Sequence record: LR745206.1
Length of the DNA stretch: 64,000 bases
Reading direction: 5' to 3' (one strand)
The notes below the pieces were generated by a model. It did no database searches and had not been told where the DNA came from. It was given only the letters and a program-made list of their open reading frames with translations. This document shows, one piece after another, positions 13,851-49,420 of this stretch. Position 1 is the stretch's first letter; every line of letters begins with the position of its first letter. Position numbers and translations under genes: made by a program.

Positions 13851-14260
13851 GGTCTTATTAATAATCTTATGATACTATCATCACCATTTTCAAAAAATAT
13901 CTCTGATGGTTTATAAATAGTTTTAAATCTATCAACATCCTCTTTTAATTGATTAACTATATTATAATAACTATCAAAATCTTCCATCTTTGCTTTATCA
14001 TAAAAATCATGGTGAAAAGATAATTCAAAACCCTCAACACAAGTTAGTAATTGTCTTTGATCACATTTTGCACCCAAAAGTTTCATACCACTGAAATCAT
14101 TATGTGCCCAATCCATCTTACTATTAGGATTAAAATAAACAATATCAATAACAGTAGCTGATCCAGATTCACAAAGGTCAAATGTATGGGCAAAGAAGTT
14201 TTGCAAATCATCTTTAGATAACTCTTGATTATTTTCATTAAATCTTCTTAAATGATTCAT
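13847..14260 (-). CDS. hypothetical protein, CTS-like N-terminus
   Basis: MNHLRRFNEN. Confidence 0.7.
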   Translation of the reverse strand: MNHLRRFNENNQELSKDDLQNFFAHTFDLCESGSATVIDIVYFNPNSKMDWAHNDFSGMKLLGAKCDQRQLLTCVEGFELSFHHDFYDKAKMEDFDSYYNIVNQLKEDVDRFKTIYKPSEIFFENGDDSIIRLLIRP

Positions 14261-15573
14261 TTTTTTCTAATAACTTTTATTCTCTCAGTTTGATATTCCA
14301 TTATATCTACCTCTTGGTGTTGTTTCAATAAATCAACCATACCTTGATACATCTGAACTGTTATTCGACAATCAGTAATAGCATCGTGATATCCAGACAT
14401 ATTAATACCAAGAGCAGGTCCTATTTTTGACATTGATGATGATATTAAACCACCATCTCTTGGTGACTTACCGATAGCATCAATCATCTCTTTATATTTA
14501 ACATCACTTTCAGCTAGTTTCTGTAATAATGGTAAAAAATATAATTGTATTAGCATTTTAGTATCAAATACCTCATTTTTAATTTTATGTCCATATCTAC
14601 CAGCTAACATAGCCATATCAAAGGCAGCATTTTGTGCAATTAATAAACAAGGCTCATAATCAGAGATGAATTGAAAAAAGTCATTAATAACTTGTTCTTC
14701 ATCTTTATATTTATAACCACCAGATCCATATCTGTTAAATCCTAGAACCCATTTAGTCCTATCTTCTGGTTCGTTATATTTAGACTTTGTATCTTTTGTT
14801 AGTTTTATTTTCTCATCAAATTTACCAAGTTCGCTAAATTTATTATTATTAAAATCACACTCAGTTACTAAACATGAAACTTGTGTTAGTTGTTCATTCC
14901 TAGGACCATTTAATCCAGTAGTTTCTGTATCTAACCAAACCCAAGGCATATCAGTTTTAGAATCTAACCAAGATAGTATTTCTGGTATAGTTTTATACCA
15001 CATCTTATTTTCATTTATCGATTCTGATATCTTATTAATATCAAATTTATATTCTTTACCAATAGCATCAGAATATGTTATTTTATTTATGTTTTTAACT
15101 GTATATTTATAGTCTGGTTTAATATATTTCTTACCAGTGCCCTTTTTAACATAAGCAATTGTTAAGTGTGGTTTATAATCAGGATATTCATTTGAATTTG
15201 GTAACTCAGATAATTTATCAAACAAATATTGTAATGATCCCTTTGGTTCTACATTGAACTTAACAACATCAAATTTAGAATTCTCAAATATATCAACACC
15301 ATTAACCTCAATATCTATATCACCATCAAAGGAGTCGAATACAGACTTAACTTCTTCTATTGATACTTCCTTATGTAAACCATATAATAATGTAAGGTGT
15401 GGTCTCTTTTGTATACCATAAGTCGAATCACCATCTTCCTCATAGATATCTTCTGGATCAATCCAAGATGTAATTTCTTCCCAGTTTGAAACTGGGACAT
15501 CAATCATAACACAACCATATTTGTGTCCGTTTATAGATTCTTTTATAAATTGCTTGTATTTCTTTAATTTCAT
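14257..15573 (-). CDS. Acb1/gp57B-like 2H phosphodiesterase fused to DEDDh (DnaQ-like) exonuclease, CTS-like N-terminus
   Basis: MKLKKYKQFIKES. Two HxT motifs (RPHLTLLYG, KPHLTIAY), then LDTETTG, QNAAFD, HDAITD. Confidence 0.85.
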   Translation of the reverse strand: MKLKKYKQFIKESINGHKYGCVMIDVPVSNWEEITSWIDPEDIYEEDGDSTYGIQKRPHLTLLYGLHKEVSIEEVKSVFDSFDGDIDIEVNGVDIFENSKFDVVKFNVEPKGSLQYLFDKLSELPNSNEYPDYKPHLTIAYVKKGTGKKYIKPDYKYTVKNINKITYSDAIGKEYKFDINKISESINENKMWYKTIPEILSWLDSKTDMPWVWLDTETTGLNGPRNEQLTQVSCLVTECDFNNNKFSELGKFDEKIKLTKDTKSKYNEPEDRTKWVLGFNRYGSGGYKYKDEEQVINDFFQFISDYEPCLLIAQNAAFDMAMLAGRYGHKIKNEVFDTKMLIQLYFLPLLQKLAESDVKYKEMIDAIGKSPRDGGLISSSMSKIGPALGINMSGYHDAITDCRITVQMYQGMVDLLKQHQEVDIMEYQTERIKVIRKK

Positions 15574-16899: not shown

Positions 16900-17175
16900 T
16901 TAGTTTAAGTTATAATTAATCATTCTTATATCTTCATCATCGTCATAATCTTCTTCATCATCGTCTCCATCAAAATCAAATCCCATATTTACTAAATAGG
17001 ACATAACTTCATCAGTTAACTCAAGATTTCCATCCCTCTCCTCCATAAAATTATCAAACATACTTGTTGTGAAGAATCCTTTTTCATCTTTGATTTTTTG
17101 TAATTTAGGTAATAAATCTTTAGCTATTTCCTCAGCCAATTTACCATACGATTCAAATGTTTTTAAATACTTCAT
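16900..17175 (-). CDS. acidic hypothetical protein, CTS-like N-terminus
   Basis: MKYLKTFES. Confidence 0.7.
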   Translation of the reverse strand: MKYLKTFESYGKLAEEIAKDLLPKLQKIKDEKGFFTTSMFDNFMEERDGNLELTDEVMSYLVNMGFDFDGDDDEEDYDDDEDIRMINYNLN

Positions 17176-17396
17176 TATCTTATTCCTTCATTTTTTAATG
17201 CCGCATTATGTGCATTGGAACCAATATAAGTTTCAACTCTCATTACATTAGGTTCACCCTCTTCAACATCCCAGGCTTCTTCTTCGGTCATAAACCATCT
17301 ATCACCAACATATCCATCACCAGCATCATATGCTCTACAATAGACAACGACTTTATCTGATTCATTACTCTCATTAAATTTATTTAAGTGTTTCAT
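17175..17396 (-). CDS. hypothetical protein, CTS-like N-terminus
   Basis: MKHLNKFNES. Paralog of the C-terminal half of 17399..17902. Confidence 0.7.
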   Translation of the reverse strand: MKHLNKFNESNESDKVVVYCRAYDAGDGYVGDRWFMTEEEAWDVEEGEPNVMRVETYIGSNAHNAALKNEGIR

Positions 17397-17398
17397 TA

Positions 17399-17902
17399 TT
17401 ATTTACTATTTCTTCTTGCTTTTCTATGTATATCTGATCCAATGAATGTCTCTACACTACCATTACAATGTTCACCCCATCCTTCATCTTGATTATCTTC
17501 CGCGGCTTCGGCTTCTTCATCTGTTAAATACCATTCTAAACTAACAGAACCATCACCATTATTCATACAAGCGTAATAAACAACAATCTTTTCAAGTGTG
17601 TTACCTGGTTTACTTACAATATTTGATGTATCTGATTCACTTCTGACATCATCCGCTATTATTTTCAAAAATCCATCTACATCACTAACTCTACCTGAGT
17701 TTATTACCATATCAAGATCTTCGATTGTCATATCAATATCATCATAAAGTTCACCTAATTCGGATAGAATATCAACACTAGCAGGTTCATCACCTTGCTC
17801 ATATTCAGATTCGTCATAATTTATAATAGAGTTGGATCTTGTTATAAAATCATTAACCTTATTATGGTTTACTGATTCATTAAATTTCTTTAAGTGTTTC
17901 AT
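17399..17902 (-). CDS. acidic hypothetical protein, CTS-like N-terminus
   Basis: MKHLKKFNES. Confidence 0.7.
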   Translation of the reverse strand: MKHLKKFNESVNHNKVNDFITRSNSIINYDESEYEQGDEPASVDILSELGELYDDIDMTIEDLDMVINSGRVSDVDGFLKIIADDVRSESDTSNIVSKPGNTLEKIVVYYACMNNGDGSVSLEWYLTDEEAEAAEDNQDEGWGEHCNGSVETFIGSDIHRKARRNSK

Positions 17903-18537
17903 TATTTCTTCTTCTTATTTTCACCACTAAAAGGACTTAGTAAATGTTTTAAATTCCAAGATGGAACAAACTTCTTATTATGTTTCTCAAAATCTTCATA
18001 TGATTCAATTCCTGTATCAATTGGATTTTGAGCATATTGTATATTAGCTCCTTGTTTAGATAAATCAGATATTCTATCACCAATATCAGTACCTTTAGTA
18101 AGTTTTCTTAATTTTTTAAGTTGATCAACTGTTTGTTGTCTAGGCAGTGATTCATTAATATTATCTTCTGAACCCCAAGTTTCGGTACCATCACCATTAT
18201 CAGTCTTTTTAAGTTTAAATCTTTTCTTCAAGTCATTCATTTGATCAAGAGCAGCATCCATATCTTCTGGTGATAAATTTGATAACATACTTCTTAATTC
18301 TTCCTCTGTATATGTATTCATCAAATCAACAGCATTTTTCAATTGTAATAGTTCTTGATACTCATCATTTTTAAGTATATTTTCTCCACACTCCGGGCAA
18401 GAAGCATCAACATGATTTGGATAATCTTCGAATGGTATAGACATATCATTCCAATCACAACTAGGATTATCACATTTCAATCCATGTATATCTAAACTAG
18501 CATCATCATTTTCATTAAATTTCTTTAAGTGATTCAT
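17902..18537 (-). CDS. zinc-ribbon protein, CTS-like N-terminus, internal INES site
   Basis: MNHLKKFNEN, CDNPSC...CPEC, DNINESLP. Confidence 0.7.
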   Translation of the reverse strand: MNHLKKFNENDDASLDIHGLKCDNPSCDWNDMSIPFEDYPNHVDASCPECGENILKNDEYQELLQLKNAVDLMNTYTEEELRSMLSNLSPEDMDAALDQMNDLKKRFKLKKTDNGDGTETWGSEDNINESLPRQQTVDQLKKLRKLTKGTDIGDRISDLSKQGANIQYAQNPIDTGIESYEDFEKHNKKFVPSWNLKHLLSPFSGENKKKK

Positions 18538-18809
18538 ATTTCATCCATAAATAATTTATCTAGGTAATCCCAAGTCTCTTGGTAACCACCATGTAATCCC
18601 CACTTATCTTCTAAGTAAGATGTTATATCATCAGCTTTATCCTCAACACCTAATTCATCATTATTAGCAACTTCTAAGAATTTGTTCTTTAAGTCTTCAT
18701 GTCCATCATAAAGATCAAAGTCTTTATCACTTAACCATTGATTAAATTTAACCCAATGTGATTGATATCCATCTCTATCAAACTCTTCAAATATTTTAAT
18801 ATGCTTCAT
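18534..18809 (-). CDS. hypothetical protein, CTS-like N-terminus
   Basis: MKHIKIFEE. Confidence 0.7.
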   Translation of the reverse strand: MKHIKIFEEFDRDGYQSHWVKFNQWLSDKDFDLYDGHEDLKNKFLEVANNDELGVEDKADDITSYLEDKWGLHGGYQETWDYLDKLFMDEI

Positions 18810-21491: not shown

Positions 21492-21892
21492 GTTATATAA
21501 GCACATATAAGATATTAAAATCATTAAAACCAATCGAATTATACGATATAATTACAGGAGGATATTGTTCTGAATATAGAGAGGAGTTTAAAAGAGAGGT
21601 TATTTCTTTGAAAGGTGAATGGTATCTAAATAATTGGCATAATAATAAAATAGAATTGGATATATTATGTGCTTATATATCTGATACAGGATTTACACTA
21701 TATACCACAAAAGAAGAGGCTAAAAGAATTGAAGAGGAATTTAAAAGTTGGAATTTATTTACTGAGGTTTGGTCAAAATGGTATGGTGGTAAAACTTATG
21801 TAGTTGGATTTAATTACTCATATGAGGCATTTAGTAAATTATATTTAGAATATAAAAGAGATAAGAAAATTAATCAATTGGTTAATTTATAA
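21488..21892 (+). CDS. hypothetical protein with C-terminal tag
   Basis: Ends YKRDKKINQLVNL. Confidence 0.65.
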   Translation: MSYISTYKILKSLKPIELYDIITGGYCSEYREEFKREVISLKGEWYLNNWHNNKIELDILCAYISDTGFTLYTTKEEAKRIEEEFKSWNLFTEVWSKWYGGKTYVVGFNYSYEAFSKLYLEYKRDKKINQLVNL

Positions 21893-22327
21893 ACTATTTG
21901 AGTGTTCTCCCCACTCAATAAATATAGTTATATAAGATAATATCTTATCCCTATAAATTTCATCAGATTCTTTATCTATTTTATATCTTATATCTGGATA
22001 TTTATCTTTAATCCTGTTGATACAAGTTTCAACATCCTTATATATCTCTAATATTTCATTGGTATTTTTTAAGAAATATTCTATACTCCCAGAAGCTACT
22101 CCAATTGAGTATCCGTCCATTTTTTTATTCGATTTGTGTATGGTTGGTAGGTTAATATTAATAGAACATTCAGCAAATGGTAAACCAGAACCAAATTTAG
22201 CATCAGAGACACCCTCATCAAATTCAAATTCTGATCCATCGTCTATAAAATCAGAGAATACTAATTTTATATAATCGGATACTTCTGAATTATCAACAGA
22301 TTCGTTATATTTTTTTAAATATTTCAT
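21887..22327 (-). CDS. hypothetical protein, CTS-like N-terminus
   Basis: Start ATG 22327, MKYLKKYNES. Paralog of 23489 and 23944. Confidence 0.7.
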   Translation of the reverse strand: MKYLKKYNESVDNSEVSDYIKLVFSDFIDDGSEFEFDEGVSDAKFGSGLPFAECSININLPTIHKSNKKMDGYSIGVASGSIEYFLKNTNEILEIYKDVETCINRIKDKYPDIRYKIDKESDEIYRDKILSYITIFIEWGEHSNSL

Positions 22328-22842
22328 CTTTTTCCTATCCATAACTGTATATATTTTTTGCTAGCAAAAAAGTCAAAAGGAAAATCTAGATTATCTTTCC
22401 TATAATCCTTTGGTAATAAATCTCTTATGGTTAGATTATAATCAGATAATCTAGAATCTATTTCTTCCAAGAATGGTAGATATTCATCAGACTCTTTACC
22501 ACCAGGCATTTTGTTATATAACCATTTTACAAAATTAAGATCATCATCATATAATTTATCAATATTAACATTTGGAAATAATTCTATCATTAGTAATTTT
22601 TTATCATTCTCATTCTTTAATTCACACCGATAACACAAATCAAACCTTTCTATAAAATCAACGATGATATATCCAATCTCATCATATTTTATTCCAAAAT
22701 TAGATTCTATCTCATCATAAATATCAATTGATCTATCATATGGTCTCCATTCATGTTCAAATCTATTACTAAAGGGAAACATATTACTATGATCTCTTTT
22801 ATCAAATCTTTTATTTTCATCAAATCTTTTAAGATATTTCAT
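22324..22842 (-). CDS. hypothetical protein, CTS-like N-terminus
   Basis: Start ATG 22842, MKYLKRFDEN. Confidence 0.7.
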   Translation of the reverse strand: MKYLKRFDENKRFDKRDHSNMFPFSNRFEHEWRPYDRSIDIYDEIESNFGIKYDEIGYIIVDFIERFDLCYRCELKNENDKKLLMIELFPNVNIDKLYDDDLNFVKWLYNKMPGGKESDEYLPFLEEIDSRLSDYNLTIRDLLPKDYRKDNLDFPFDFFASKKYIQLWIGKR

Positions 22843-23492
22843 CAATATTCACTGTTATCTTTTTCAAATAAATCATTATCAACTATATCTTCTAACAACT
22901 TTTCAATACTATCTTTTTTCGTAGCTCTTCCATATCCGGATGTATAGTATATTTCACTTTCACTTATATATTTTGCTTTATCATTATAACTATGATCATC
23001 ATAATAATATGAAATACCAAATTCAACACCACCATCATATCTTTTAAGATTTTCGCCTAAAAATTTAATACTTTTAACTATATCCGGTCTTAATTCAAAC
23101 CCATCTTCCGCATCATTAAAACAGTAACTACTACCAATTGTGAAATAAAATTGATTTGTGTTCTGATTGAATCCAGTTTGATGAACTCCATGTAACTCCC
23201 TAATATATTTCTGAGCAATTTCATAATGTTTTTGTGTTGTTCCGTGTCCATGTTGGAATATCCATTCCAATTGTTCTTTGTTAAAATCAAAAATACTACC
23301 TGGTAAACTTTCTGAATACTTAGATTCTATATCCTCTCTTCTAGAAATTAGTAATCTATTAATATCACCTATCTCCTTATTAACTTCTTCTTGTTCTATG
23401 CGTAACCATTTTAATCTCTCCTTTAGCTCATCATCTGATAAAGATCCAAGTGTTACTATTTTAGATTCGTTATATTTTCTTAAATACTTCAT
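22842..23492 (-). CDS. hypothetical protein, CTS-like N-terminus
   Basis: Start ATG 23492, MKYLRKYNES. Confidence 0.7.
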   Translation of the reverse strand: MKYLRKYNESKIVTLGSLSDDELKERLKWLRIEQEEVNKEIGDINRLLISRREDIESKYSESLPGSIFDFNKEQLEWIFQHGHGTTQKHYEIAQKYIRELHGVHQTGFNQNTNQFYFTIGSSYCFNDAEDGFELRPDIVKSIKFLGENLKRYDGGVEFGISYYYDDHSYNDKAKYISESEIYYTSGYGRATKKDSIEKLLEDIVDNDLFEKDNSEY

Positions 23493-23941
23493 CTTCTCCA
23501 AGTTTCAGTTTTATTTCTACTTGAATACCAAAAATAAAGAAAAACATCACTCTCTCTCATATCATCTCTTAATGAAAAGGCAGCTGAATCGAAATCACTA
23601 TTAACATTACTCTTCTTAGTGACCAAATAATGTTCCAATCCTGGAAATTCATCTTCTATCCTTTTAATACATGAATTAATATCTAACATAATTTCTTTAT
23701 AATTATCAATTTCTTTTAAATAGCTGTCAATATAATGTGTAGTGGGTAAAGCCTTTATTAAAACTAATATTCCACCCTCTGAACCTTTTCTATCTAAATA
23801 AAATTTATTAAAAAAGTTAAAATCATATTTTATGTCTAAAACAACACCATCTTCAATAAGATCATCAAATATCATATCAAAGAATTCCTTATCTAATTCT
23901 TTCTTATCAACAGATTCGTTATATTTTCTTAAATAATTCAT
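23489..23941 (-). CDS. hypothetical protein, CTS-like N-terminus
   Basis: Start ATG 23941, MNYLRKYNES. Confidence 0.7.
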   Translation of the reverse strand: MNYLRKYNESVDKKELDKEFFDMIFDDLIEDGVVLDIKYDFNFFNKFYLDRKGSEGGILVLIKALPTTHYIDSYLKEIDNYKEIMLDINSCIKRIEDEFPGLEHYLVTKKSNVNSDFDSAAFSLRDDMRESDVFLYFWYSSRNKTETWRR

Positions 23942-23943
23942 AA

Positions 23944-24342
23944 TCACCATTTAAAATAAACATAGACATATGAAAACGATTTACCATCTGATTGAAAATC
24001 AGCTTCTTTAGTTATCACATGTTTAATATTTGGATATTTATCCAATACTTTATTTATACAAGATTTAATATCTTCATACCTCTCCACAACCTCTTTTGCG
24101 TTATTTAGAAATATATCTATATCTCCTTCACTCCACAAGTCATGTCCACCTTCGGATTTGTGTTCTAATATTGGTAAAGTTATAATAATACTTACCTCAT
24201 TAACACCTTCTTCAAAATCATTCTCATCAGCGCTAATAAATTTAAATTCAGATCCTTCATCTATAAAGTCAATAAATACCAATTTGATATAATTAGGATC
24301 TATTTTCCCAATTGATTCATTATATCTTTTCAAATGTTTCAT
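23944..24342 (-). CDS. hypothetical protein, CTS-like N-terminus
   Basis: MKHLKRYNES. Confidence 0.7.
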   Translation of the reverse strand: MKHLKRYNESIGKIDPNYIKLVFIDFIDEGSEFKFISADENDFEEGVNEVSIIITLPILEHKSEGGHDLWSEGDIDIFLNNAKEVVERYEDIKSCINKVLDKYPNIKHVITKEADFQSDGKSFSYVYVYFKW

Positions 24343-25400
24343 TTCAATATATCCTCAATTTTATTACCATCTTTATCAGACAATTGTAATTTTTTTATCT
24401 TTTGGAATTTACCATTTCTCTTATTACCACTAAAAGTATCATCATCTAATATAATATCATTACCAGTATATTTTCTAAGTACACCTTTATAGTGTTCACC
24501 TTCATAATCAAAATCAGCTATTATTTCACCATTCTTTATTCTTTCTTTAAATAAAGTCTTTTTATAGATTAGATCAGGATTTTGTAAATATTTCATTCTA
24601 GCTTCTGATTTAGCTAATTTATTTTTATGTTTTTCTGTTGGTAATGATAATAATATTTTATAAGTATTTGTATCTTTACTATATTGACCTATTGATATGT
24701 GTGTATTATTCGGAACACTATCATCAGTAACACAATGTTTATTTCCTTGGGTAGTGAAGTTCCAATGATCAGAAACTCTATAAGATTTATCTGGTTTATG
24801 ACCCCAATCAATATCGGTTGAACTATAAAATGTGTCACTATAAGGAGACCTATTAATAACCTCCCAAGTTGACATCATTTTTATAATATCATCTGGAATA
24901 CCATAATCTTTCAATTCATCAACAGACACAATCTTATTAGTTAACTCCTTATGATATTTTAACCTTTTAAGCTCTTTTTTACTTAAAGGCTTTGATTCCT
25001 CTGTTTCTGTGAACTTCTCAAATATATCACCATATATTTTTCGGTTAATCATTTCTATTTTTATACGATAGGCTGGTTTGGTTATGGATTTAACATTAAT
25101 ATTAAATCCATTATTATCTAAATAGATTTTTAGTCTATCAATACTATCTAATATCTCTGAATCAATTTCAAATTTAACAGATCCCTTATCCCATTTCTGA
25201 ATAGTTATATGTGGATATTTATCATTTGGGTAGTTTGGTGAATATCTTTCATATGGTGGCCACCATTGATATGAGACATCAAATCCGAGATCTTTCAATT
25301 CAAGAAAAATATCAAATATATCATTTTGTAAATTACTTGGTATAGTTTCTGCTTGCCAATTAGTTGCCTCAAATACTTTAAATTCTATTAGATGATTCAT
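24339..25400 (-). CDS. two-domain hypothetical protein, CTS-like N-terminus
   Basis: MNHLIEFKVFEA, internal IFEKFTE, second domain with RVSDHWNF. Confidence 0.7.
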   Translation of the reverse strand: MNHLIEFKVFEATNWQAETIPSNLQNDIFDIFLELKDLGFDVSYQWWPPYERYSPNYPNDKYPHITIQKWDKGSVKFEIDSEILDSIDRLKIYLDNNGFNINVKSITKPAYRIKIEMINRKIYGDIFEKFTETEESKPLSKKELKRLKYHKELTNKIVSVDELKDYGIPDDIIKMMSTWEVINRSPYSDTFYSSTDIDWGHKPDKSYRVSDHWNFTTQGNKHCVTDDSVPNNTHISIGQYSKDTNTYKILLSLPTEKHKNKLAKSEARMKYLQNPDLIYKKTLFKERIKNGEIIADFDYEGEHYKGVLRKYTGNDIILDDDTFSGNKRNGKFQKIKKLQLSDKDGNKIEDILK

Positions 25401-26258: not shown

Positions 26259-26438
26259 ATGAAAACATCTAAGATACATATTGGTACAATAACTAAAGAT
26301 CAAATTCTTACATCAAATAGGAAGATATCTAGAGAGATTGAATTGGAAAATTCAATTGGGTGGGTGTCTATGAATAAAGTTCATAAGTCTAAGAAAACAT
26401 ACACAAGAAAACCTAAATACAAAGAAACCTACTCTTAA
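26259..26438 (+). CDS. small basic protein (possible ArfA-like ribosome rescue factor)
   Basis: Start ATG 26259, C-terminal VHKSKKTYTRKPKYK. Confidence 0.45.
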   Translation: MKTSKIHIGTITKDQILTSNRKISREIELENSIGWVSMNKVHKSKKTYTRKPKYKETYS

Positions 26439-26635
26439 TTGAATAGGTTTTTTATTTTCTTTTTTCTTGATTCCACTTTCCCGTCTTTTAGATAATCACT
26501 ATATCTTATATTTTTATTTAAATTTTCACATAAGTAATCACAATAAGCACTTTGTAGATTCAAATTTTCAGATATATATTCAGAATAAGATATATTCTTT
26601 TCTAGGCTTTCGGCTATATAATCCTCATAATTCAT
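26435..26635 (-). CDS. small 14-residue-repeat protein with C-terminal tag
   Basis: Start ATG 26635. Y-x-[DE]-Y-[IL]-x-E-[SN]-L repeats, ends [11 protein letters not shown]. Confidence 0.65.
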   Translation of the reverse strand: MNYEDYIAESLEKNISYSEYISENLNLQSAYCDYLCENLNKNIRYSDYLKDGKVESRKKKIKNLFN

Positions 26636-26831
26636 AAATATTTTTAATTTTTTTCTTTCTACTACCAGACCTATCAGTCCAAACATCAGAATGGAAGGTT
26701 AATTGCATCCATTTGTTATTTTGATAAATATAATTCACACAATCAATAGTATTATAATAAATATCACCTTCTATTGGTTCTGATGGTACAGAAGTTGAAA
26801 CACTTAACTGATATTTAAATGGATCTATCAC
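26625..26831 (-). CDS. small protein with tail-fibre-like motif and C-terminal tag
   Basis: [13 protein letters not shown]...YIYQNNKW, ends [12 protein letters not shown]. Confidence 0.6.
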
Positions 26832-32777: not shown

Positions 32778-32966
32778 ATGGAATTAGAAGAAAAAATTGA
32801 ATTAAATAAGCTTATAAGAAAATATGATGGTGATAACTCATTCTTACTTTCTTTGCAGAAAAGTCTAAAAACATCTAAGTATTTAGAAAAGGTTGTGGTT
32901 GGTAATAAAACACTTAAAATATTAAGTGAAAAGCAATATTTAGCGGCTAAGAGTTCTCTAGATTAA
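32778..32966 (+). CDS. hypothetical protein
   Basis: 62 aa ORF in operon. Confidence 0.55.
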   Translation: MELEEKIELNKLIRKYDGDNSFLLSLQKSLKTSKYLEKVVVGNKTLKILSEKQYLAAKSSLD

Positions 32967-34290: not shown

Positions 34291-34877
34291 ATCTCATCAA
34301 ATCTTTTAATTTTAAATAAAGAACTAATATTATCCAATTTAGCATTTATCTCTGTTATTATCTGTTTATGAACTCTATTCATTGGTCTGTTTTTCTCAAG
34401 ATCAGATATTATATTAACAGTTTCTCTGAAATATTTATTCCTAAACCTCTCAGGTGCGGTAAAAGCATCCGATATATTTTGAAGTCTATCAGCTAATTTT
34501 ATAATAAGAGCATCTTCTGACATAAGATTCATTTTATCAATTAGATAATTTGTTTTACTTCCATCATAATCATGATCTATTTCATCACCAATAGATGTAA
34601 CTTCAATTACTAAATCAGCTACTCTTTTACCAAATCTAGATTTTATTTCTTCATATCCAACATCTTGGTCTTCATAACAATCCTCCAATACATCATGTAA
34701 TAAAGAAGCACATAATATATCTTCATCTTGATTATATCTTTTAACAATCCCATTAACCTTTTGAACATGAGCATCAAAATAAGGTTGATTTATAAATTTC
34801 CTAATCTGTTTTATATGTGCTTCTTTAGCAAAATTCCAGGCTAACTTTTCTTTATATGTTATTGGTCTGTTCGCCAT
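34287..34877 (-). CDS. HD-domain (p)ppGpp hydrolase-like protein (Mesh1/SAH family)
   Basis: PYFDAH, ASLLHDVLED, VADLVIEVT, IKLADRLQNI. Confidence 0.8.
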   Translation of the reverse strand: MANRPITYKEKLAWNFAKEAHIKQIRKFINQPYFDAHVQKVNGIVKRYNQDEDILCASLLHDVLEDCYEDQDVGYEEIKSRFGKRVADLVIEVTSIGDEIDHDYDGSKTNYLIDKMNLMSEDALIIKLADRLQNISDAFTAPERFRNKYFRETVNIISDLEKNRPMNRVHKQIITEINAKLDNISSLFKIKRFDEI

Positions 34878-36442: not shown

Positions 36443-36445
36443 AAG

Positions 36446-36470
36446 AAACCAGATTAATTATCTGGTTTTT
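36446..36470 (+). terminator. intrinsic terminator
   Basis: AAACCAGAT-loop-ATCTGGTTTTT. Confidence 0.75.
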
Positions 36471-36479
36471 TAATATATA
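36471..36479 (+). promoter_or_regulatory. putative late promoter TAATATATA
   Basis: Exact motif 5 nt before the Rnl1 ATG. Confidence 0.55.
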
Positions 36480-36484: not shown

Positions 36485-37747
36485 ATGAAATTATTTAAAT
36501 ACATAGAATTTATAAATGAAAACTCAAAGAATGAGTATTCAATTCCTTCTTATGAAGAAGCTGTGGAGTTATGCTCAAAAGATGATGCTCCTTTTTATGA
36601 ATCAAAAATGATTGTTGATGGATATAATGTATCTGTCTTTAATTATAGACTTGCTCAATATAAAGATTTTGCTAATCCATTAGAACACAAACCAGAATTA
36701 AAAGGTTATGAAATGAGGGGGTTAACATTTGTATTCAATGAGGATGGTTCATTATTCAATAGATATGTTTTACTTGAGAAATTCTTTAACATAAACCAAG
36801 TTCCAGAATCAATGTATTCTATTGTTAAAAACTACAAAATAAAGTATGTTAATAATAAGGAAGATGGTTCTATTGCTTCATTTATTAAATTACCAAATGG
36901 TAAAATTGTTGGAAAGTCTAAAATGGGATTTGATAATGATCAATCAAATGGTATTAATAGAATTTATAATATAAATAAAGATGTTAAGAACTTAGTTAAT
37001 TGGTGTTTAGATAATGATATAGTTTCTATATTCGAATATGTTGCTCCTCACAATAGAATTGTTTTGAGATATACTACCGAAGACTTAATACTTTTAAGAT
37101 TAAGAAATAATAAAACTGGTAAACATATTGATATACAAGACCACTTAGATAAGATTGGTTCTATAAAGATTGCTCCTTTTGAGGATGATCACCAAGGGGA
37201 TTTAGATAAGTTGATTGAGTTGGTTGCTAAACAAATTGATAAAGAGGGTTGTATTGTACAAGCTGAGGATGCTAAAGGAAGAGATTTTTTCTTTAAGTTA
37301 AAAACTCCTTGGTACTGTGAACGACACGGTCTACTCACAGATGATATTTACAGAGAGCATATCATTATAGGATATATCCTAGATGATAAGATTGATGATA
37401 TTCTTGGTCAAATACCAGAAGAAGAGTTTGAAGCGCATGAAAGAATAAATAAGATTATACAAATAGTTAAAAAAGCTATATCTGACAAAATGACAGACAT
37501 AGAGAAATCTTATGAAGTTTTTGTCAGTATGGGTGAAAATAGAAAGGAATATGCTTTAAAATATATGGGTGTTGAACCAAACTTTGGTTATGTGATGAAT
37601 TTGGCTAATGGTAAAGATGTATATGATTTAGCTAAGGATTATATAAGAGATCATACTAAGAGGTTAATGATAGCTAGAGATTGGTTACAAGAAATTGATC
37701 CAACACTGTTTTTCCAAGACCCAGAGGAAGATGAAGAAGATAATTAA
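36485..37747 (+). CDS. rnlA: RNA ligase 1 (T4 Rnl1 family) with CTS-like N-terminus
   Basis: MKLFKYIEFINEN, YEMRGLTF, LEKFFN, NKEDGS motif I, FEYVAPHNRIVLRY, EGCIV, KLKT. Confidence 0.85.
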   Translation: MKLFKYIEFINENSKNEYSIPSYEEAVELCSKDDAPFYESKMIVDGYNVSVFNYRLAQYKDFANPLEHKPELKGYEMRGLTFVFNEDGSLFNRYVLLEKFFNINQVPESMYSIVKNYKIKYVNNKEDGSIASFIKLPNGKIVGKSKMGFDNDQSNGINRIYNINKDVKNLVNWCLDNDIVSIFEYVAPHNRIVLRYTTEDLILLRLRNNKTGKHIDIQDHLDKIGSIKIAPFEDDHQGDLDKLIELVAKQIDKEGCIVQAEDAKGRDFFFKLKTPWYCERHGLLTDDIYREHIIIGYILDDKIDDILGQIPEEEFEAHERINKIIQIVKKAISDKMTDIEKSYEVFVSMGENRKEYALKYMGVEPNFGYVMNLANGKDVYDLAKDYIRDHTKRLMIARDWLQEIDPTLFFQDPEEDEEDN

Positions 37748-37770
37748 GAGAGTTTTTAACTCTCTTTTTT
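37746..37770 (+). terminator. intrinsic terminator
   Basis: AAGAGAGTT-TTT-AACTCTCTTTTTT. Confidence 0.75.
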
Positions 37771-37783: not shown

Positions 37784-38146
37784 ATGAAATATTTAGATAC
37801 ATATAGACTATTCGAAGGTCAAGAATTGGATAGTAACATTGAGAATATTGAAGAGATATGTGATGTTTGTATTGATATTATGCAAGAATTGGAAGATTCT
37901 GGATTTAGAATAGGTACATCAGTATCAAGACAGGATGATAGTTTGAAGTTAAGACTTACTTGTAACATAGCAAAACCAACTGCATTTAGATGGGGTAAAC
38001 ATTATGTTATAGATGTTTATGATAGATTAAATGATTACCTATCAACAGAGGGTTTTATAGAGTTTGATAGAAGCCTTGGTAGTGTGGCTAATTTCCCAGT
38101 TGTTGATGGTATGTATCAAGCTTCTATTATATTTGATGAAAAATGA
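37784..38146 (+). CDS. hypothetical protein, CTS-like N-terminus
   Basis: MKYLDTYRLFEG, ELEDSGF paralog family. Confidence 0.7.
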   Translation: MKYLDTYRLFEGQELDSNIENIEEICDVCIDIMQELEDSGFRIGTSVSRQDDSLKLRLTCNIAKPTAFRWGKHYVIDVYDRLNDYLSTEGFIEFDRSLGSVANFPVVDGMYQASIIFDEK

Positions 38147-38156: not shown

Positions 38157-38678
38157 ATGAGATTAATTAAAAAGTTTGAGAATTTTAATGATATTGGAGA
38201 TATTGAATTATCTGATTATTTTATGGGTGAGCCAGATAAACAATATGTTGATTTTGAATCTACACACGATCCATTTGAAACTTCAAATGGTAAGATAGTT
38301 GGATTAAACCACAATTCACATTCATCATTTAGAAAAGGTAATAGAAGTATAAAACCAACAGAAGATATGGTAAGTGGTGTGGTTGATATATTTAGTGAAG
38401 TTTTAGGTGATTCGATTAATCATCATGAATATTACCCAGAGTATAAACAAATATACTTTTATACATGGTCAAATAAACAAATGAGTTATGGTGAAAGTTC
38501 AAAGGCAAATAAAAAGCAAATAATTATCGATTTTTATAAAAATGATTGGATATTTGTGAGTCTAATTGATGAGAATAGTTATAAACAATCAAATAGAGAG
38601 AAACATAGTATATGTAAGGGTCTAGGTGGATTAATAGAATTTCTTAATGATAAAAAAGAATATATTAGTAATAAATGA
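38157..38678 (+). CDS. hypothetical protein, CTS-like N-terminus
   Basis: Start ATG 38157, MRLIKKFENF. Confidence 0.65.
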   Translation: MRLIKKFENFNDIGDIELSDYFMGEPDKQYVDFESTHDPFETSNGKIVGLNHNSHSSFRKGNRSIKPTEDMVSGVVDIFSEVLGDSINHHEYYPEYKQIYFYTWSNKQMSYGESSKANKKQIIIDFYKNDWIFVSLIDENSYKQSNREKHSICKGLGGLIEFLNDKKEYISNK

Positions 38679-39343
38679 AACATTTAAAATCATATCAATT
38701 ATTTGAGTCTTCTACTAGACCAGAATTATCTAATCAAGAAATAGATAATGATAGAATTTATAGTGATATAAATGATATATGCCAAGATGTTATTGATACT
38801 GGATTAGAAGTTAAGATAGATATTAGTGATTATAAAAAAGTGGATAATGCTTTATGTACTGATGTTGTGCTTATAGGAATACACATACCATCCGAAAACT
38901 TTCTAACTGATAAGGGTTCTTTTGTATATGGTGATATAAAAGAAACCTTTGATAGAATAATTGATTATCTTAAAATATTTGGATATGATAATCATAAATT
39001 TAAAGTTTTTAATTTTGGTGGAAATACACTATTCAAAGATTTTGATGGTGATGTCAAGGAATCATCTTCATCCTTTAGATTAATACTTTATAAATCAATT
39101 GATCATATTATAGAATCTAAAACAACACCTAAATTGAAATTCAACAAACAACCTAGAAAGAAAGGTGCTAAGACTGACGTTTATAATGTGGTAAAGAACG
39201 GTACTATAATAGGTCAAGTTAAATGGTATAGTAGATTGCGTGGTTATGGTTTCTTACCACCATCTGGTGATGAATCTGAGGTGAAAGAATTTGTTAAAGA
39301 AATTTCTAGATTACGTAGAGAAGAAAAGAAAAAGAGTAAGTAA
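38675..39343 (+). CDS. two-domain hypothetical protein, CTS-like N-terminus
   Basis: MKHLKSYQLFES, internal HIIES before a basic domain. Confidence 0.7.
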   Translation: MKHLKSYQLFESSTRPELSNQEIDNDRIYSDINDICQDVIDTGLEVKIDISDYKKVDNALCTDVVLIGIHIPSENFLTDKGSFVYGDIKETFDRIIDYLKIFGYDNHKFKVFNFGGNTLFKDFDGDVKESSSSFRLILYKSIDHIIESKTTPKLKFNKQPRKKGAKTDVYNVVKNGTIIGQVKWYSRLRGYGFLPPSGDESEVKEFVKEISRLRREEKKKSK

Positions 39344-39635: not shown

Positions 39636-41510
39636 ATGGCGAAAGACGTAATTATAGGAATTGACCTTGGGACCACAAATTCATGTGTTGCAGTGGTAGA
39701 AGGTGGAGAACCTATTGTAATCACAAATTCAGAGGGTAGAAGAACAACCCCATCAGTTGTCGGATTCACAGACAATGACAGAAAAATTGGAGATCCTGCT
39801 AAAAGACAAGCAGTTACTAATCCAACAAAAACAGTTTATTCGATTAAACGTTTCATTGGTAAGGACTTCTCAGTTTGTAAAGATGAAATTGGAAAGGTTC
39901 CTTATAAAGTAGTTAAAACAGGATCTAACGTACCTGGTGTTCAAATAGATGATAGAGTTTATACACCACAAGAAATATCAGCTATGATTCTACAAAAGAT
40001 GAAGAAGACAGCCGAAGAATATTTAGGACATGAAGTAACCAGAGCGGTTATTACTGTTCCAGCTTACTTTGGTGATGCTGAAAGAACTGCAACTATTGAA
40101 GCTGGTGAGATAGCTGGTTTGAAAGTTGAGAGAATTATAAATGAACCAACTGCCGCAGCTCTAGCATACGGACTAGATAAGAAAAATACAGATTCTAAGA
40201 TTCTTGTATTTGATTGTGGTGGTGGTACACATGACGTTTCTGTTTTAGAAATCGGTGATGGTGTTTTTGAAGTAAAATCTACTGATGGTGATACTCACTT
40301 AGGTGGTGATGATTTCGATAACGCAATTATTGATTGGATGGTATCAGAATTCAAATCAGACCATGATATGGATTTATCAAAAGATGCTATGGCTCTTCAA
40401 AGATTGAAGGAAGCTGGTGAGAAGGCAAAAATTGAACTATCATCTTCAACACAAACTGAGATTAATTTACCTTACATCACCGCTAAAGATGGTGTTCCTT
40501 TACACTTTGTTAAGAAATTGACAAGTGCTAAATTCGAACAAATGACTTCTAAGTTAGTAGATAGAACTATCGCTTGTGCGAAAAGTGCTCTTAAAAACGC
40601 AGGGTTAAAACCATCTGATATTGATGAAGTAATTCTTGTGGGTGGTTCTACTAGAATTCCAGCTATCCAAAATGCTATCGAGAAGTATATTGGTAAATCC
40701 CCAAATAAATCAGTAAACCCTGATGAAGTTGTTGCTCTTGGAGCCGCTATTCAAGGAGCTGTTTTATCCGGAGGAATTACAGATGTTTTACTTCTTGATG
40801 TTACACCACTTTCACTTGGTATTGAAACAATGGGGTCAGTAATGACCAGATTGATTGAGGCTAATACTACGATTCCGACCCGTAAGTCAGAAACGTTCTC
40901 AACAGCTTCAGATAATCAACCATCTGTTGAGATTCATGTTTTACAAGGTGAAAGACCAATGGCTAAAGATAACCGTTCACTAGGTAGATTCCATCTTGAT
41001 GGGATAATGCCAGCACCAAGAGGTATTCCTCAGGTTGAAGTGACATTGGATATTGATGCTAATGGTATACTTTCTGTATCCGCTAAAGATAAAGCTACTG
41101 GAAAAGAGAATAAGATTCGAATTGAAGGTGGTTCTCAATTATCTAAAGAAGAGATAGAAAGAATGAAGGCTGAGGCTGAAGCAAATTCAGAATCAGATAA
41201 ACTCGAAAGAGAAAAAGTTGACAAGGTTAATATGGCAGATAATTTAATCTTCCAAACAGAGAAACAAATGAAAGAATTTTCTGAGAAATTAACAGAAGAT
41301 GATAGGTCTTCTCTTAATTCAGACCTTGAGGAGTTGAGAAAGGCTCATTCTGAACAAGACGTTGATAAAATAGACGAAACATCTAATAAGTTAAACGAAA
41401 CTTGGTCAGCTATTAGCACTAGACTATATCAACAAACAAACGAATCAGAATCTACTGATGATGGTGATCCTGATGGTGGTGTGGAAGACACTTCTTATGA
41501 AGAAGTGTAA
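39636..41510 (+). CDS. dnaK: chaperone DnaK (Hsp70)
   Basis: [52 protein letters not shown]. Confidence 0.97.
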
Positions 41511-41546: not shown

Positions 41547-42803
41547 TTAATTACCTTCTGTGTAACTACCTTCTGTATCTCTAAAAACTCTAAAGTCCTT
41601 GTCTTCGAGTGAGTCATCATCATTTGTTAATGTATCAGTCTCAGTGTCTAAATAACAAACAGTATCCATATATGGATAATAATCCCAATCACCATCATCC
41701 AATTTAACAGTTATTATAGCTGATTTTGTTGTTGATCCATCAGTTATACTCTCATTCGGTGACATACTCTGTGATTTCTTATACCACCATCCATTTTTCT
41801 CAGCGAATTGTTTAAATAATTCAACATCGGAATCATGTGTGGTATATATTCTGTCCATAAAATTAGCAGCTTGTCCACCTATTTTAGCGTCCCATAATAA
41901 AGCTCTCCCCTTTATCATCTTACTAACATATCTACCATCTTTAATCTCACCATCATCATCATATAAAATTACTAAACTAACTTGTTTATTAAAACAATAA
42001 ATATCAAAATAGTCTGTATCAACTTCTGCCATACAAGAATTATTCAATGTACCACCACCATCAACATATGTATCTTCACCACTATTATCATACCAACGAG
42101 CAATTTCTTTACCCTTTACAATATCAAATTGTTTTAAGGCATCTTGTGCAAAATCATAAGTTGCTTTATATTGATTTGTAAATTCTTCAATTTCTTTATC
42201 AATAAATTTTATATCAGAAGCTTTTAAAATAGCTCTCACTAATCTACCAACCTTTATATTATTTCTTGATGTTGTCCATATTCTAGAATCATCAGCGTCC
42301 GTTGGTTCAATAGCTTCTTTATTTAAAACTGTTTTTTTCGGATCATCCACACCATATTCTTGAAACACAACATAAACTCTACCAGAGGTAGTACTAATTG
42401 TCTCTTTTAATACAAGTCCAATTATACCATGAGAAGGTGACCAAGGCTCTCCATTTGGCTTCTCATAATCTAAGGCTTCAAATATTCTATCATTACCTTT
42501 ACCATGTGTTAAGTATCTTTCAGAATCAATAACCTTCCAAGTTTCTGGTTTATCTTTTATAATTTCTTTAACTTTTCTATCTGGTGTGAAAGATACAGCG
42601 TCCTTCTCATCAGTGATATCAATATAATTATGAGTTATATTGATATCCTTTGAATAGGTGCTTAATAATTCAGATGCTATTCTATTGGTCTTCATCTTCG
42701 AAAGAAGACTAATGAATTTAGTAGAAAATACCACTTTTGATTCTAGTAATAGCTCATAAGCCATTTTCTCTGTGATATACTCATTATATTTTAATAAAAT
42801 CAT
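41547..42803 (-). CDS. conserved-looking phage protein with CTS-like N-terminus
   Basis: MILLKYNEYITE...LLES. C-terminal NSCM, GRALLW, FMDRIY, YPYMDT motifs. Confidence 0.65.
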   Translation of the reverse strand: MILLKYNEYITEKMAYELLLESKVVFSTKFISLLSKMKTNRIASELLSTYSKDINITHNYIDITDEKDAVSFTPDRKVKEIIKDKPETWKVIDSERYLTHGKGNDRIFEALDYEKPNGEPWSPSHGIIGLVLKETISTTSGRVYVVFQEYGVDDPKKTVLNKEAIEPTDADDSRIWTTSRNNIKVGRLVRAILKASDIKFIDKEIEEFTNQYKATYDFAQDALKQFDIVKGKEIARWYDNSGEDTYVDGGGTLNNSCMAEVDTDYFDIYCFNKQVSLVILYDDDGEIKDGRYVSKMIKGRALLWDAKIGGQAANFMDRIYTTHDSDVELFKQFAEKNGWWYKKSQSMSPNESITDGSTTKSAIITVKLDDGDWDYYPYMDTVCYLDTETDTLTNDDDSLEDKDFRVFRDTEGSYTEGN

Positions 42804-44710: not shown

Positions 44711-45412
44711 CTATGGTCTATTTACTCTTTCTATGAAATTGATATGAATTTTATTATCTTTTAATTCTATATCATATTTCCATCTCCAATTTTGACCACC
44801 AAGATATCTAAACTTTGGCTCAAATAATTTTCTGATGAATGTTTTAACATCACTTAGTAATGTTTTGGATTCAAAACCATCTTCTATTGGTAATAGAACA
44901 ACACCATTTCTATCTTGTGAATATTTAAATGCTCTGGTTACCTTTGTATACCTATGATCTAAGTTTCTTTTTATAACATCTAGAAATTCATAGAATCCTT
45001 CTTTTTCAACAGGAACCTCTTCATTGGATTCTTCATCTATTAAATGATAAACTATATTAATTTTATTATTAGATGATATATCAATTCTTTCAATGTAAGT
45101 TTCTCCAAATTCAGAAAGCCTATCATTAGACTCTTCTAACTCTTCAAAAATATTTTTAATTAAATTTATATCAACAAAGTCTGTTATTTTCTTATTAAGT
45201 GTTGCTATATAACCAGGTTTTCTATAATATTGGTTTGGATTATCTGATGTTGTATAAGCTCTTCTTGATTCATCTGTATTAGTATTACGATCAGAAAAAT
45301 ATACCTTTTTAATATCCAATTCTAAACCAAAATCAATTAAGTGTATAAATATATCATTGAAATCATGATATTCTTTGGTATGTGATTCATTAAATGATTT
45401 AAGATGTTTCAT
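44711..45412 (-). CDS. hypothetical protein, CTS-like N-terminus
   Basis: MKHLKSFNES. Confidence 0.7.
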   Translation of the reverse strand: MKHLKSFNESHTKEYHDFNDIFIHLIDFGLELDIKKVYFSDRNTNTDESRRAYTTSDNPNQYYRKPGYIATLNKKITDFVDINLIKNIFEELEESNDRLSEFGETYIERIDISSNNKINIVYHLIDEESNEEVPVEKEGFYEFLDVIKRNLDHRYTKVTRAFKYSQDRNGVVLLPIEDGFESKTLLSDVKTFIRKLFEPKFRYLGGQNWRWKYDIELKDNKIHINFIERVNRP

Positions 45413-45969
45413 TACTCAGTTTCAATTTCGAATTCTTCGTCCTCACCGCCAAATTTCTCATCCATCTCTATTTTAAGATCGATGAGGAATTCCTCATCTA
45501 TGTTTTTAACTTCAATGTTTTTAGAGATTTGACCAAGCACTTCAAATGTATCCAAATCATATTTTTTTAGTTTGATATAACACTTCTCTATATCCTCTAT
45601 ACTAAAATCCTTTTCTTTATCTTTTGGGATAGCTTCTTTTATATCCACCATGATTATAAGAGCATAAGTATTAGTATCATCTGAAAATTTAATAGTTAAT
45701 GTATCATACATCTTAGAATATTTAGAAACCTCAGAACTTTCCAACCTAACACCTAAATCCTTAAATGTCATTTTATCTCCATTTTGATTTAATTTTTTAA
45801 TTTTTGTTGGATCTTCTTCTGCTTCTGGTGGATTATCTATATCACCTTCTTGAAACTCAAACATCTTATCAACTTTTACTTTAATTTGTTGTAATAATGT
45901 TGATATATAAGACTCTGGGGTCTCATGTAAGTCTTCTGTTATAAATTCTATATACTTTCTAATCTTCAT
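45412..45969 (-). CDS. acidic hypothetical protein, CTS-like N-terminus
   Basis: MKIRKYIEFITE. Confidence 0.7.
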   Translation of the reverse strand: MKIRKYIEFITEDLHETPESYISTLLQQIKVKVDKMFEFQEGDIDNPPEAEEDPTKIKKLNQNGDKMTFKDLGVRLESSEVSKYSKMYDTLTIKFSDDTNTYALIIMVDIKEAIPKDKEKDFSIEDIEKCYIKLKKYDLDTFEVLGQISKNIEVKNIDEEFLIDLKIEMDEKFGGEDEEFEIETE

Positions 45970-48034: not shown

Positions 48035-48105
48035 GAGAATGGCGATCTCATTTAGATTATCCAGGTTTATAACCCCAGGTATTTGGGGGTATCCTGATGA
48101 CTTTA
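48035..48105 (+). other. GC-rich structured intergenic element
   Basis: GAGA/TCTC hairpin, then CAGG..ACCCC/GGGGGT..CCTG extended hairpin, between prkA and yeaH. Confidence 0.35.
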
Positions 48106-48156
48106 GTATTAAGCAAAAAATTGCGTTAAGAAAATCAAAAATTAAGAAAATATTCA

Positions 48157-49419: not shown

Positions 49420-49420
49420 T

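Follow-up and report, generated by a model that had tools for sequence, protein, structure and literature searches.

What is a T4-type RNA ligase doing behind an N-terminal peptide that looks like a capsid-targeting signal? The question is raised by an open reading frame (ORF) of the Rnl1 RNA ligase family that lies within a 64,000-nucleotide stretch of a megaphage genome. This stretch, called the window hereafter, was located by megablast and tblastn at positions 434001-498000 of the record LR745206.1 (634,780 bp; unannotated and described as "uncultured phage"), and coordinates given without an accession are those of the window. LR745206.1 is among the four largest curated genomes in Al-Shayeb et al. 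2020 and belongs to the Mahaphage clade, whose hosts were predicted to be Bacteroidetes (PMC7162821).

In this work, we came to read the product of this gene, with somewhat better than even confidence, as a ligase precursor whose capsid-targeting propeptide would lead to its packing into the virion and its injection. Judged from its sequence, the leader propeptide is one copy of a module, [YF]-x-x-[FY]-[IL]-x-E, that is at once the T4 capsid-targeting sequence (CTS) and the unit repeated in the scaffold of the phage itself. What we infer is that the leader binds the scaffold and is cleaved off, that the ligase is packaged and injected, and which RNA it acts on.

Four megaphage genomes were compared (LR745206.1, LR756502, LR756504 and LR756501), and Tenacibaculum phage PTm1, a cultured relative with the same head module, served as control genome. 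Genome-wide counts rest on crude ORF calls, for which the longest ORF starting with ATG was taken if it reached 50 aa. Small parts of the window were also found in five sequencing runs, all of DNA.

The ligase and its catalytic residues

The earlier note on this DNA, made from the sequence alone, had claimed Rnl1 motifs for this ORF, and these proved genuine. The ORF matched RNA_lig_T4_1 (PF09511) in Pfam (E 8.3e-21, residues 77-277) and phrog_562 in PHROG (E 1.4e-56, residues 23-392, reaching profile position 365 of 377), and its sequence matches in the PDB were to T4 Rnl1 only (2c5u, 5tt6 and 9do4; E ~1e-23). For the T4 enzyme (RnlA), we take R54, K75, F77, K99, G102, K119, E159, E227, G228, K240 and K242 to be the essential residues. 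Two of them, Arg54 and Lys75, were confirmed as essential in T4 Rnl1 (PMC6379707). When the two proteins were aligned, all 11 were identical in the megaphage ligase (R78, K99, F101, K125, G128, K146, E184, E254, G255, K271 and K273), and all were invariant across an alignment of 46 Rnl1 homologs (alignment A1). Motif I reads K125-E-D-G, with K125 facing T4 K99, E184 facing E159, E254-G255 facing E227-G228, and K271 and K273 facing K240 and K242; the ATP contacts of the N-terminal sub-domain are kept as well, R78, K99 and F101 standing at the positions of T4 Arg54, Lys75 and Phe76/77.

The all-helical C-terminal domain was recovered by several routes. Besides the phrog_562 match, the phmmer alignment with T4 Rnl1 extends to query residue 379, and the AlphaFold2 model shows helices over residues 291-404 with a predicted local distance difference test score (pLDDT) mostly above 85. 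In Foldseek, the best matches of this model were T4 Rnl1 2c5u and 5tt6 (408 columns), followed by fungal Trl1 ligase domains; owing to poorly modelled parts, the global TM-score to T4 Rnl1 stayed low (0.39-0.43). Nucleotidyltransferase motifs (I, III, IV and V), ATP-contact residues and the helical C-domain that defines the clade were all found. In Rnl1, this helical domain is the source of tRNA anticodon-loop specificity. It is followed by an acidic C-terminal tail that is conserved in the A1 consensus and absent from T4 Rnl1; within residues 409-420, F409 and F410 are invariant in A1, and the tail may be a protein-interaction handle. From its sequence, the ORF apparently encodes a catalytically competent RNA ligase.

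The annotation of phrog_562, its best PHROG family, is 'RNA ligase and tail fiber protein attachment catalyst', which opens another reading: the main use of the protein could be tail-fibre attachment of the gp63 type, the leader bringing it to the assembling virion and RNA repair being irrelevant. A promoter-like motif common to the Rnl1 gene and to structural genes (see below) would suit such a role. We nevertheless hold it to be highly improbable, as conservation extends over all the ligase catalytic residues and over the C-domain that specifies tRNA, the same leader is found on enzymes unrelated to fibres, and T4 assembles its head and attaches its tail fibres by separate pathways.

A leader set in front of the ligase and found across the genome

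Alignments with T4-type ligases start only at residue 23 of the ORF, ahead of which lie the leader and a linker. Among the other megaphages, the LR756502 ortholog (73% identity) has a leader of its own (MKKLHRYNSFIKES); the orthologs of LR756504 (39% identity) and LR756501 (40% identity, 268 aa, without C-domain) have none and begin at an IPSYEE-type segment, so the tag is lineage-specific and no intrinsic part of ligase function. It was found in nearly all of the 120 closest homologs in the metagenome collection (identity of at least 69%, contigs up to 642 kb), in the form MK[LIK][FH][RKN]Y..F[IL].E[SN]. In these 120 proteins the linker varies in both length (~4-10 residues) and sequence, and both of its flanks are conserved. 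Within A1, E12 was invariant and Y6 and F9 were conserved at 90% or more. In the AlphaFold2 model, residues 1-15 (pLDDT below 50) lie outside the fold, with a short free helix at residues 3-10.

The leader is not restricted to the ligase. Regular expressions (regex) for it, which both miss and over-call some leaders, matched 74 of the 915 ORFs of LR745206.1 and 86 of the 950 of LR756502; LR756504 and LR756501 have their own leader variants at similar frequency. These counts left out some ORFs that look tagged, for instance three of the window (6351-6869, 16900-17175 and 32947-34290). Three classes were distinguished in LR745206.1: class A, MK[YH]LKxFNE (n=37), class B, MK[YH]LKxYKLFE (n=20), and class C, x(K)KYxxF[IL]xE (n=17, including Rnl1). 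N-terminal against internal occurrences of the three patterns were 37:1, 16:2 and 15:6 over 195,205 residues. Deprived of their leader, the 74 proteins fell into 63 BLAST clusters, 58 of which were singletons; like a CTS, the leader is a short peptide at the extreme N-terminus, common to otherwise unrelated proteins. Among IMG/VR contigs, more than 120 stretches contained the exact class-A DNA pattern as well.

The genes that carry the leader turn over quickly, and the leader itself tends to stay. A reciprocal best match in LR756502 was obtained for 24 of the 74 leader genes, versus 438 of all 915 ORFs, and in the LR756502 orthologs the leader is usually retained, sometimes with its class switched. 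Synonymous codons within it follow genome-wide usage (Leu TTA/CTA/TTG/CTT; Ser TCA/TCT/AGT), which argues for selection on the peptide.

Three other origins of the leader were considered and rejected: an RNA-level cause as the main explanation, since synonymous codons vary as elsewhere in the genome; the N-terminus of a paralog family, given the number of clusters; and an artefact of AT-rich composition, given T4 and also PTm1, which at 29.7% G+C yielded 2 weak regex matches among 297 ORFs.

Likeness to the T4 signal, the head genes and the scaffold repeats

In T4, internal proteins enter the prohead core by means of an N-terminal CTS of 10-20 residues, which is later removed by gp21 (PMC5694885, PMC3012670). 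The CTS of IPIII is MKTYQEFIAE (PMC8442874), and this N-terminus was read for IPII and IPIII from the T4 record itself. A position matrix was trained on 75 class-C leaders of the four megaphages only and then applied to the N-termini of 151 T4 ORFs (T4 50-150 kb). IPII and IPIII came out on top with 13.7 bits, the next ORF scoring -0.0, and gp24, with its known propeptide MAKINELLRE, ranked fourth. The N-terminus of T4 gp22, MLKEQLIAEA, echoes the CTS too.

Head genes of the T4 type were found in the order portal, protease-scaffold and major capsid protein, the portal matching T4 gp20 (E 4.9e-23) and the capsid protein gp23 (E 6e-6). Between them, a 707-aa protein joins a protease to a scaffold. 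At its N-terminus, this protein has a head maturation protease domain (phrog_207, E 2.9e-30; weak Peptidase_S77 match), in which the blocks NRNxRxY, GEFDHP and VSSR are conserved and align to T4 gp21. The T4 gp21 protease follows the cleavage rule [LI]-x-E. That the prohead protease cuts after Glu is documented (PMC5694885). The N-terminal region of the capsid protein contains, near residue 52, an [IM]-x-E-N that is conserved in the four megaphages and PTm1 (SINEN here), upstream of the segment that aligns to the mature N-terminus of T4 gp23, and I-N-E-N is common to this site and to the end of the Rnl1 leader. The leader combines its likeness to the T4 CTS with an end of the [LI]-x-E type, in a genome that encodes a gp21-family protease.

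The finding that told us most concerns the scaffold part of the 707-aa protein: it consists of ~11 tandem repeats of 14 residues (consensus NIAYSEY[IL]AENLDK), and in the DNA these appear as a 42-bp unit that is present in 10.7 copies with 82% matches and encodes NIAYSEYIAENLDK. Set side by side, the scaffold repeat reads Y-S-E-Y-I-A-E-N, the T4 CTS Y-Q-E-F-I-A-E-A and the Rnl1 leader Y-I-E-F-I-N-E-N. Counted per 100 aa, the pattern [LIF]xE[SNA] was found 2.7 times within the scaffold part and 0.33 times over the proteome, and the gene with the most internal matches to the leader matrix was that of the scaffold in every one of the four genomes. Individual repeats scored moderately and none was a top single match, because Ala replaces Asn or Lys at one position. 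Leader-like scaffold repeats were present in 4/4 megaphages; PTm1, without leaders, has a different scaffold. Together with the matrix ranking and the genes of gp20, gp21 and gp23 type, these repeats uphold the earlier description of the ligase N-terminus as capsid-targeting-like. As the leader appears to be one scaffold repeat, a model follows in which cargo would co-assemble with the scaffold and the protease would cut both at like sites.

The same likeness can be turned another way. Tagged proteins could be core or filler of a very large prohead, degraded or expelled at maturation as the scaffold is, so that no active ligase would be delivered. A leader equal to the scaffold repeat would fit this, as would an ORF composed only of such repeats (26435-26686) and the many cargo proteins that are small acidic ORFans without family match. 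A filler role, however, would leave active sites unmaintained, whereas the catalytic residues of Rnl1 are strongly conserved in at least 46 homologs and other cargo proteins are intact enzymes (PPK2, E 1.2e-79; NUDIX, E 4e-30; GH108). We therefore judge it improbable, and keep to a ligase that would be delivered active. The repeat-only ORF, 55% identical by BLASTP to residues 313-363 of the protease-scaffold protein, looks from its sequence like a free 'mini-scaffold' or an adaptor.

Two further features of the head proteins were observed. An acidic, Glu-rich stretch follows the repeats in the 707-aa protein. A 157-aa paralog of the N-terminal region of the capsid protein (LR745206.1 291407-291880; 41% identity over residues 8-118) has an HSINEN site and a Lys-rich tail end, adjoins leader genes and has a counterpart in LR756502.

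Flanking signals and the promoter-like motif

The earlier note had set the ligase gene behind its own terminator and a sequence motif, and both were located. The upstream hairpin, which runs into a T-run, was matched in folding by none of 200 shuffles (0/200), and was omitted by a simple consensus terminator scan; it is read as the terminator-like end of the upstream unit. With the second hairpin behind the stop codon, the Rnl1 gene is a putative one-gene unit, bounded by two hairpins. A scan for sigma-70 promoters gave 30 sites versus 28.9 in shuffled sequence, i.e. no excess.

Among upstream 8- to 9-mers, the motif between the first hairpin and the ATG, TAATATATA, ranks first, with 191 copies in the genome, 144 of them at most 60 nt upstream of called starts. 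It was found upstream of 39% of leader genes versus 14% of other genes (Fisher p 2.6e-7). Its distance to start codons falls into two sharp classes, 4-6 nt and ~16-29 nt, and four genes, those for the portal, protease-scaffold, tail-tube-like and 1910-aa proteins, also have it within ~20-40 nt of their start. A shared motif fits co-expression of leader genes with head genes, as far as the sequence allows this to be judged. The ligase gene has the 5-nt spacing of the 4-6 nt class, which implies leaderless or near-leaderless mRNAs.

This spacing class bears on a further alternative, in which the leader would be a family-wide tag with a job outside the capsid, e.g. in translation of leaderless mRNAs, as a DnaK/DnaJ handle or as an address to another intracellular site, and Rnl1 would be cytoplasmic as in T4. 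T4 Rnl1 is indeed a cytoplasmic enzyme, and a TAATATATA ending 4-6 nt ahead of the start codon was counted for 27 of the 74 leader genes versus 64 of 841 other genes. Moreover, Hsp70 and DnaJ are encoded within the same window, and the acidity of the cargo and the very large number of tagged proteins would be easier to accommodate. Against this, leader codons follow genome-wide usage although the amino acids are fixed; 40/74 leader genes are without TAATATATA within 45 nt, and many lie inside arrays. Such a tag would also not account for an invariant Glu at a fixed distance followed by a hypervariable linker, nor for the specific match of the leader to the T4 CTS and the scaffold repeat, and it would leave unexplained why leaders are absent from PTm1 at the same G+C. 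We consider this alternative possible, though on the unlikely side, and retain delivery by the capsid as the preferred reading.

Candidate partners for RNA repair

For the T4 pathway, the earlier note had paired Rnl1 with Pnk; this pairing did not hold in the megaphage. A phosphatase domain of the T4 Pnk type was not found, T4 PseT matching LR745206.1 and LR756502 through its kinase domain only (residues 4-140) and having no match in LR756504 and LR756501. The kinase-phosphatase partner that makes the T4 pair of Rnl1 and Pnk, by which T4 counters the anticodon nuclease PrrC, is missing from the genome, which encodes a leaderless stand-alone kinase of 161 aa instead, ~1 kb from a tRNA cluster. 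Tpt1 (PF01885) had no match in the four megaphage genomes, and control genomes matched. The tagged candidate for RNA healing is a 2H phosphoesterase. The activities of a Trl1-type enzyme are all encoded, as separate genes 22-52 kb apart: Rnl1, the kinase and the 2H phosphoesterase (PF13563). A search for Rnl1 in PTm1 gave no match, and the control search likewise gave none.

Of the tRNA genes identified by ARAGORN, 59 in all, four are for Lys; most lie in clusters at 342-344, 365-369, 388-390 and 407-408 kb. A supply of tRNA clearly counts for the phage. 'Pre-packaged tRNA repair' by Rnl1 is plausible from sequence, and would have to do without a T4-type Pnk.

Proposed route and points that weigh against it

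The proposed route has five steps. The ligase gene would be transcribed from the TAATATATA promoter, of a kind also found before head genes. In the prohead, the leader and the repeats of the protease-scaffold protein would co-assemble. The gp21-type protease would then cut after Glu12 (I-N-E/N, the slash marking the cut), as it would the scaffold repeats ([IL]-A-E/N) and the N-terminal domain of the capsid protein (S-I-N-E/N). The mature ligase would be kept in the head and would enter the cell with the DNA. There, it would seal broken tRNA or other RNA ahead of phage gene expression, and its partners would be the tagged 2H phosphoesterase-exonuclease, the SMODS-associated NUDIX protein, PPK2 and the GH108 lysozyme.

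Several points weigh against this route. Tagged proteins make up ~8% of ORFs, far above the handful of T4. Mature leader proteins are acidic (median isoelectric point 4.8 versus 5.7 for other proteins), and the internal proteins of T4 are basic. Since 27/74 leader genes have the motif 4-6 nt before the ATG, first-codon selection for translation of leaderless mRNAs is possible. As to the reaction itself, breaks that leave a 2',3'-cyclic phosphate and a 5'-OH are beyond repair by Rnl1 alone; neither a Pnk phosphatase nor Tpt1 was found in the searches of the megaphage genomes, and the kinase is without leader. Finally, the standing of TAATATATA as a late promoter is putative.

A broader proposal goes beyond the ligase, and we put it forward tentatively, at rather less than an even chance. 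The capsids of the largest phages would contain a 'starter proteome' of ~70-90 proteins (8-10% of genes), with the RNA ligase, the 2H phosphoesterase-exonuclease, the SMODS-associated NUDIX protein, PPK2 and the lysozyme in their number, each addressed by one copy of the scaffold repeat and freed by the prohead protease; the T4 CTS would be a reduced form of this 'scaffold-mimic' system, and Rnl1 the first RNA-repair enzyme found to be so delivered.

If the ligase is packaged, cleavage of tRNA or other RNA could become reversible ahead of phage gene expression, adding a new layer against tRNA-cutting defences. Beyond this gene, ORFs without annotation in the genomes of the largest phages, hundreds of them, become a class of candidate injected proteins, recognisable by 12 residues and open to testing. 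A principle of capsid targeting is also suggested, namely a tag that imitates a scaffold repeat, and cargo could be loaded into large capsids with the leader as a short tag of natural origin.

Tagged cargo and neighbouring genes

The features of the locus and the other tagged genes are collected in Table 1. The majority of tagged proteins were without family match. The fusion of a 2H phosphoesterase to an exonuclease matched PF13563 (E 3e-8), PF23474 (Acb1; E 6.7e-5), RNase_T (E 2.6e-7), phrog_755 and phrog_192, and its 2H orthologs in LR756502 and LR756504 are leader-tagged as well; it may serve in healing of RNA ends or in degradation of cyclic-nucleotide defence signals. For PPK2, the called start probably lies too far upstream, as its leader comes after an internal Met. 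As a set, the tagged enzymes plausibly cover functions in cell entry and counter-defence.

Table 1 Features of the ligase locus, the tagged genes and related genes (window coordinates unless LR745206.1 is given; a slash marks the predicted cut)
Feature	Position	Strand	Details
Rnl1-family RNA ligase ORF	36485-37747	+	420 aa; N-terminus MKLFKYIEFINEN
Leader, residues 1-12, MKLFKYIEFINE	36485..36520	+	class C CTS-like propeptide; predicted cut after Glu12, I-N-E/N
Variable linker, residues 13-20	36521..36544	+	between leader and conserved IPSYEE ligase start
Adenylyltransferase domain	36545..37354	+	T4 RnlA alignment, PF09511
Rnl1-type all-helical C-terminal domain	37355..37708	+	phrog_562, phmmer, AlphaFold2, Foldseek
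Acidic C-terminal tail FFQDPEEDEEDN and stop codon	37709..37747	+	conserved in A1 consensus; absent from T4 Rnl1
Upstream hairpin into T-run	36443..36471	+	12-bp stem, 5-nt loop; dG -13.6 kcal/mol, z -6.0
TAATATATA promoter-like motif	36471..36479	+	ends 5 nt upstream of ATG
Terminator-like hairpin and T7	37746..37766	+	9 pairs; dG -9.2 kcal/mol; 2 sites vs 0.6 expected
2H phosphoesterase (LigT/Acb1-like) and DEDD exonuclease fusion	14257..15573	-	leader MKLKKYKQFIKE/S
Five small leader genes in tandem	16900..18809	-	MKHIKIFEE, MNHLKKFNE, MKHLKKFNE, MKHLNKFNE, MKYLKTFES; single TAATATATA ahead of first
Six leader genes in tandem	21887..25400	-	three of six are paralogs
Mini-scaffold ORF	26435..26686	-	~four scaffold/leader-type repeats and basic tail; 83 aa, probably 66 aa from internal Met
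Leader gene, MKYLDTYRLFE/G	37784..38146	+	120 aa; without family match
Leader gene, MKHLKSYQLFE/S	38675..39343	+	222 aa; leader
Class-C leader gene, MILLKYNEYITE/K	41547..42803	-	418 aa; without family match
Two adjoining leader genes, MKIRKYIEFITE/D and MKHLKSFNE/S	44711..45969	-	185 aa and 233 aa; leaders
GH108 lysozyme, leader-tagged	LR745206.1 96496-97470, outside window		E 3.6e-15
PPK2, leader-tagged	LR745206.1 143761-144993, outside window		E 1.2e-79
Protease-scaffold fusion	LR745206.1 198546-200669 (locus L143 546-2669), outside window		707 aa; between portal and capsid genes
SMODS-associated NUDIX, leader-tagged	LR745206.1 340824-341435, outside window		E 4e-30
Stand-alone Pnk-type kinase	LR745206.1 418268-418753, outside window		161 aa; AAA_33, kinase half of phrog_505; without leader

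The core replication genes of the window (topoisomerase II, dCMP deaminase, Hsp70/DnaJ and adenylate kinase) carry no leader. Topoisomerase II is split in the T4 style into a GyrB-like (55368-57212, -) and a ParC/GyrA-like protein (59052-60395, +), and these, the dCMP deaminase (51130-51507, -) and a NusG-like protein (51697-52233, -) are all leaderless. Hsp70/DnaK is full-length (39636-41510, +; E 3e-250), and DnaJ has its J, zinc-finger and C-terminal domains (26828-27910, -).

Other neighbours were recorded in the window. A complete PrkA/DUF444 (YeaH)/SpoVR trio (46112-50920, +) is unusual for a phage; in bacteria, this trio is a module associated with stress or sporulation. An HD_4 phosphohydrolase of the RelA/SpoT-type HD (34287-34877, -) has TAATATATA ahead of it. 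In LR756501, the Rnl1 gene is flanked by an HD protein gene directly downstream and by an ATP-dependent DNA-ligase-like gene directly upstream, so that a linkage between ligase and HD protein may be meaningful. A run of ORFs at 152-6192 (+) is of nucleotide-sugar epimerase/dehydratase and glycosyltransferase-like type, judging by N-terminal sequences only.

Comparison with known systems

We know of no phage that packages an RNA-repair enzyme. A full-text literature search on huge phages and capsid targeting found nothing, and the source paper of the genome has no mention of an RNA ligase or of an N-terminal leader (PMC7162821). The enzyme is known and so is the kind of signal; their combination and its scale are not described before.

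The closest enzyme is T4 RNA ligase 1 (gp63, RnlA; 2c5u, 5tt6), with which the megaphage protein shares the PF09511 and phrog_562 family, the two-domain layout and 11/11 catalytic and ATP residues. It differs by an identity of ~27% and by its 12-residue leader, 8-residue linker and acidic C-terminal tail. To our knowledge, T4 Rnl1 is not a virion protein.

Fungal and plant Trl1, in which an Rnl1-like ligase, a P-loop kinase and a 2H cyclic phosphodiesterase are joined, has the same three activities as the megaphage genome (PMC6379707). In the latter, however, the genes are unfused and non-adjacent, the leader is on the ligase and the 2H enzyme only, and no Tpt1 was found in the four genomes; the 2H domain could alternatively serve in Acb1-like degradation of cyclic-nucleotide signals.

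Giant phages of the phiKZ type (phiKZ, 201phi2-1 and SPN3US) also have many head-internal proteins cut after Glu by a gp21-related protease, with propeptides thought to target the prohead (PMC5694885). Unlike the megaphage leader, these propeptides are mostly longer than 100 residues, end in an A/S/G-x-E site and have no short N-terminal consensus in common.

The head module resembles the T4 gp21 protease and gp22 scaffold, and the 'prohead core scaffolding protein and protease' of PTm1, in gene order and in the gp21 blocks, and the fusion of protease to scaffold is as in PTm1. The PTm1 protein differs in being without CTS-like 14-residue repeats that end in [IL]-A-E-N, and PTm1 is also without leaders.

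As to the signal itself, the megaphage leader shares with the T4 CTS of IPII and IPIII its N-terminal place, its length of 10-13 residues and an aromatic-x-x-aromatic-[IL]-x-E pattern followed by a small or polar residue. In both systems the cargo genes are unrelated, fast-evolving and set in arrays, and IPII and IPIII were the sole T4 matches of the leader matrix (PMC5694885, PMC3012670, PMC8442874). In contrast to the T4 signal, the megaphage leader, known here from sequence, stands on at least 74 proteins per genome and in three classes (MKYLKxFNE, MKYLKxYKLFE and xKKYxxFIxE), and acidic proteins predominate among its cargo, some of which are enzymes acting in RNA and nucleotide metabolism.

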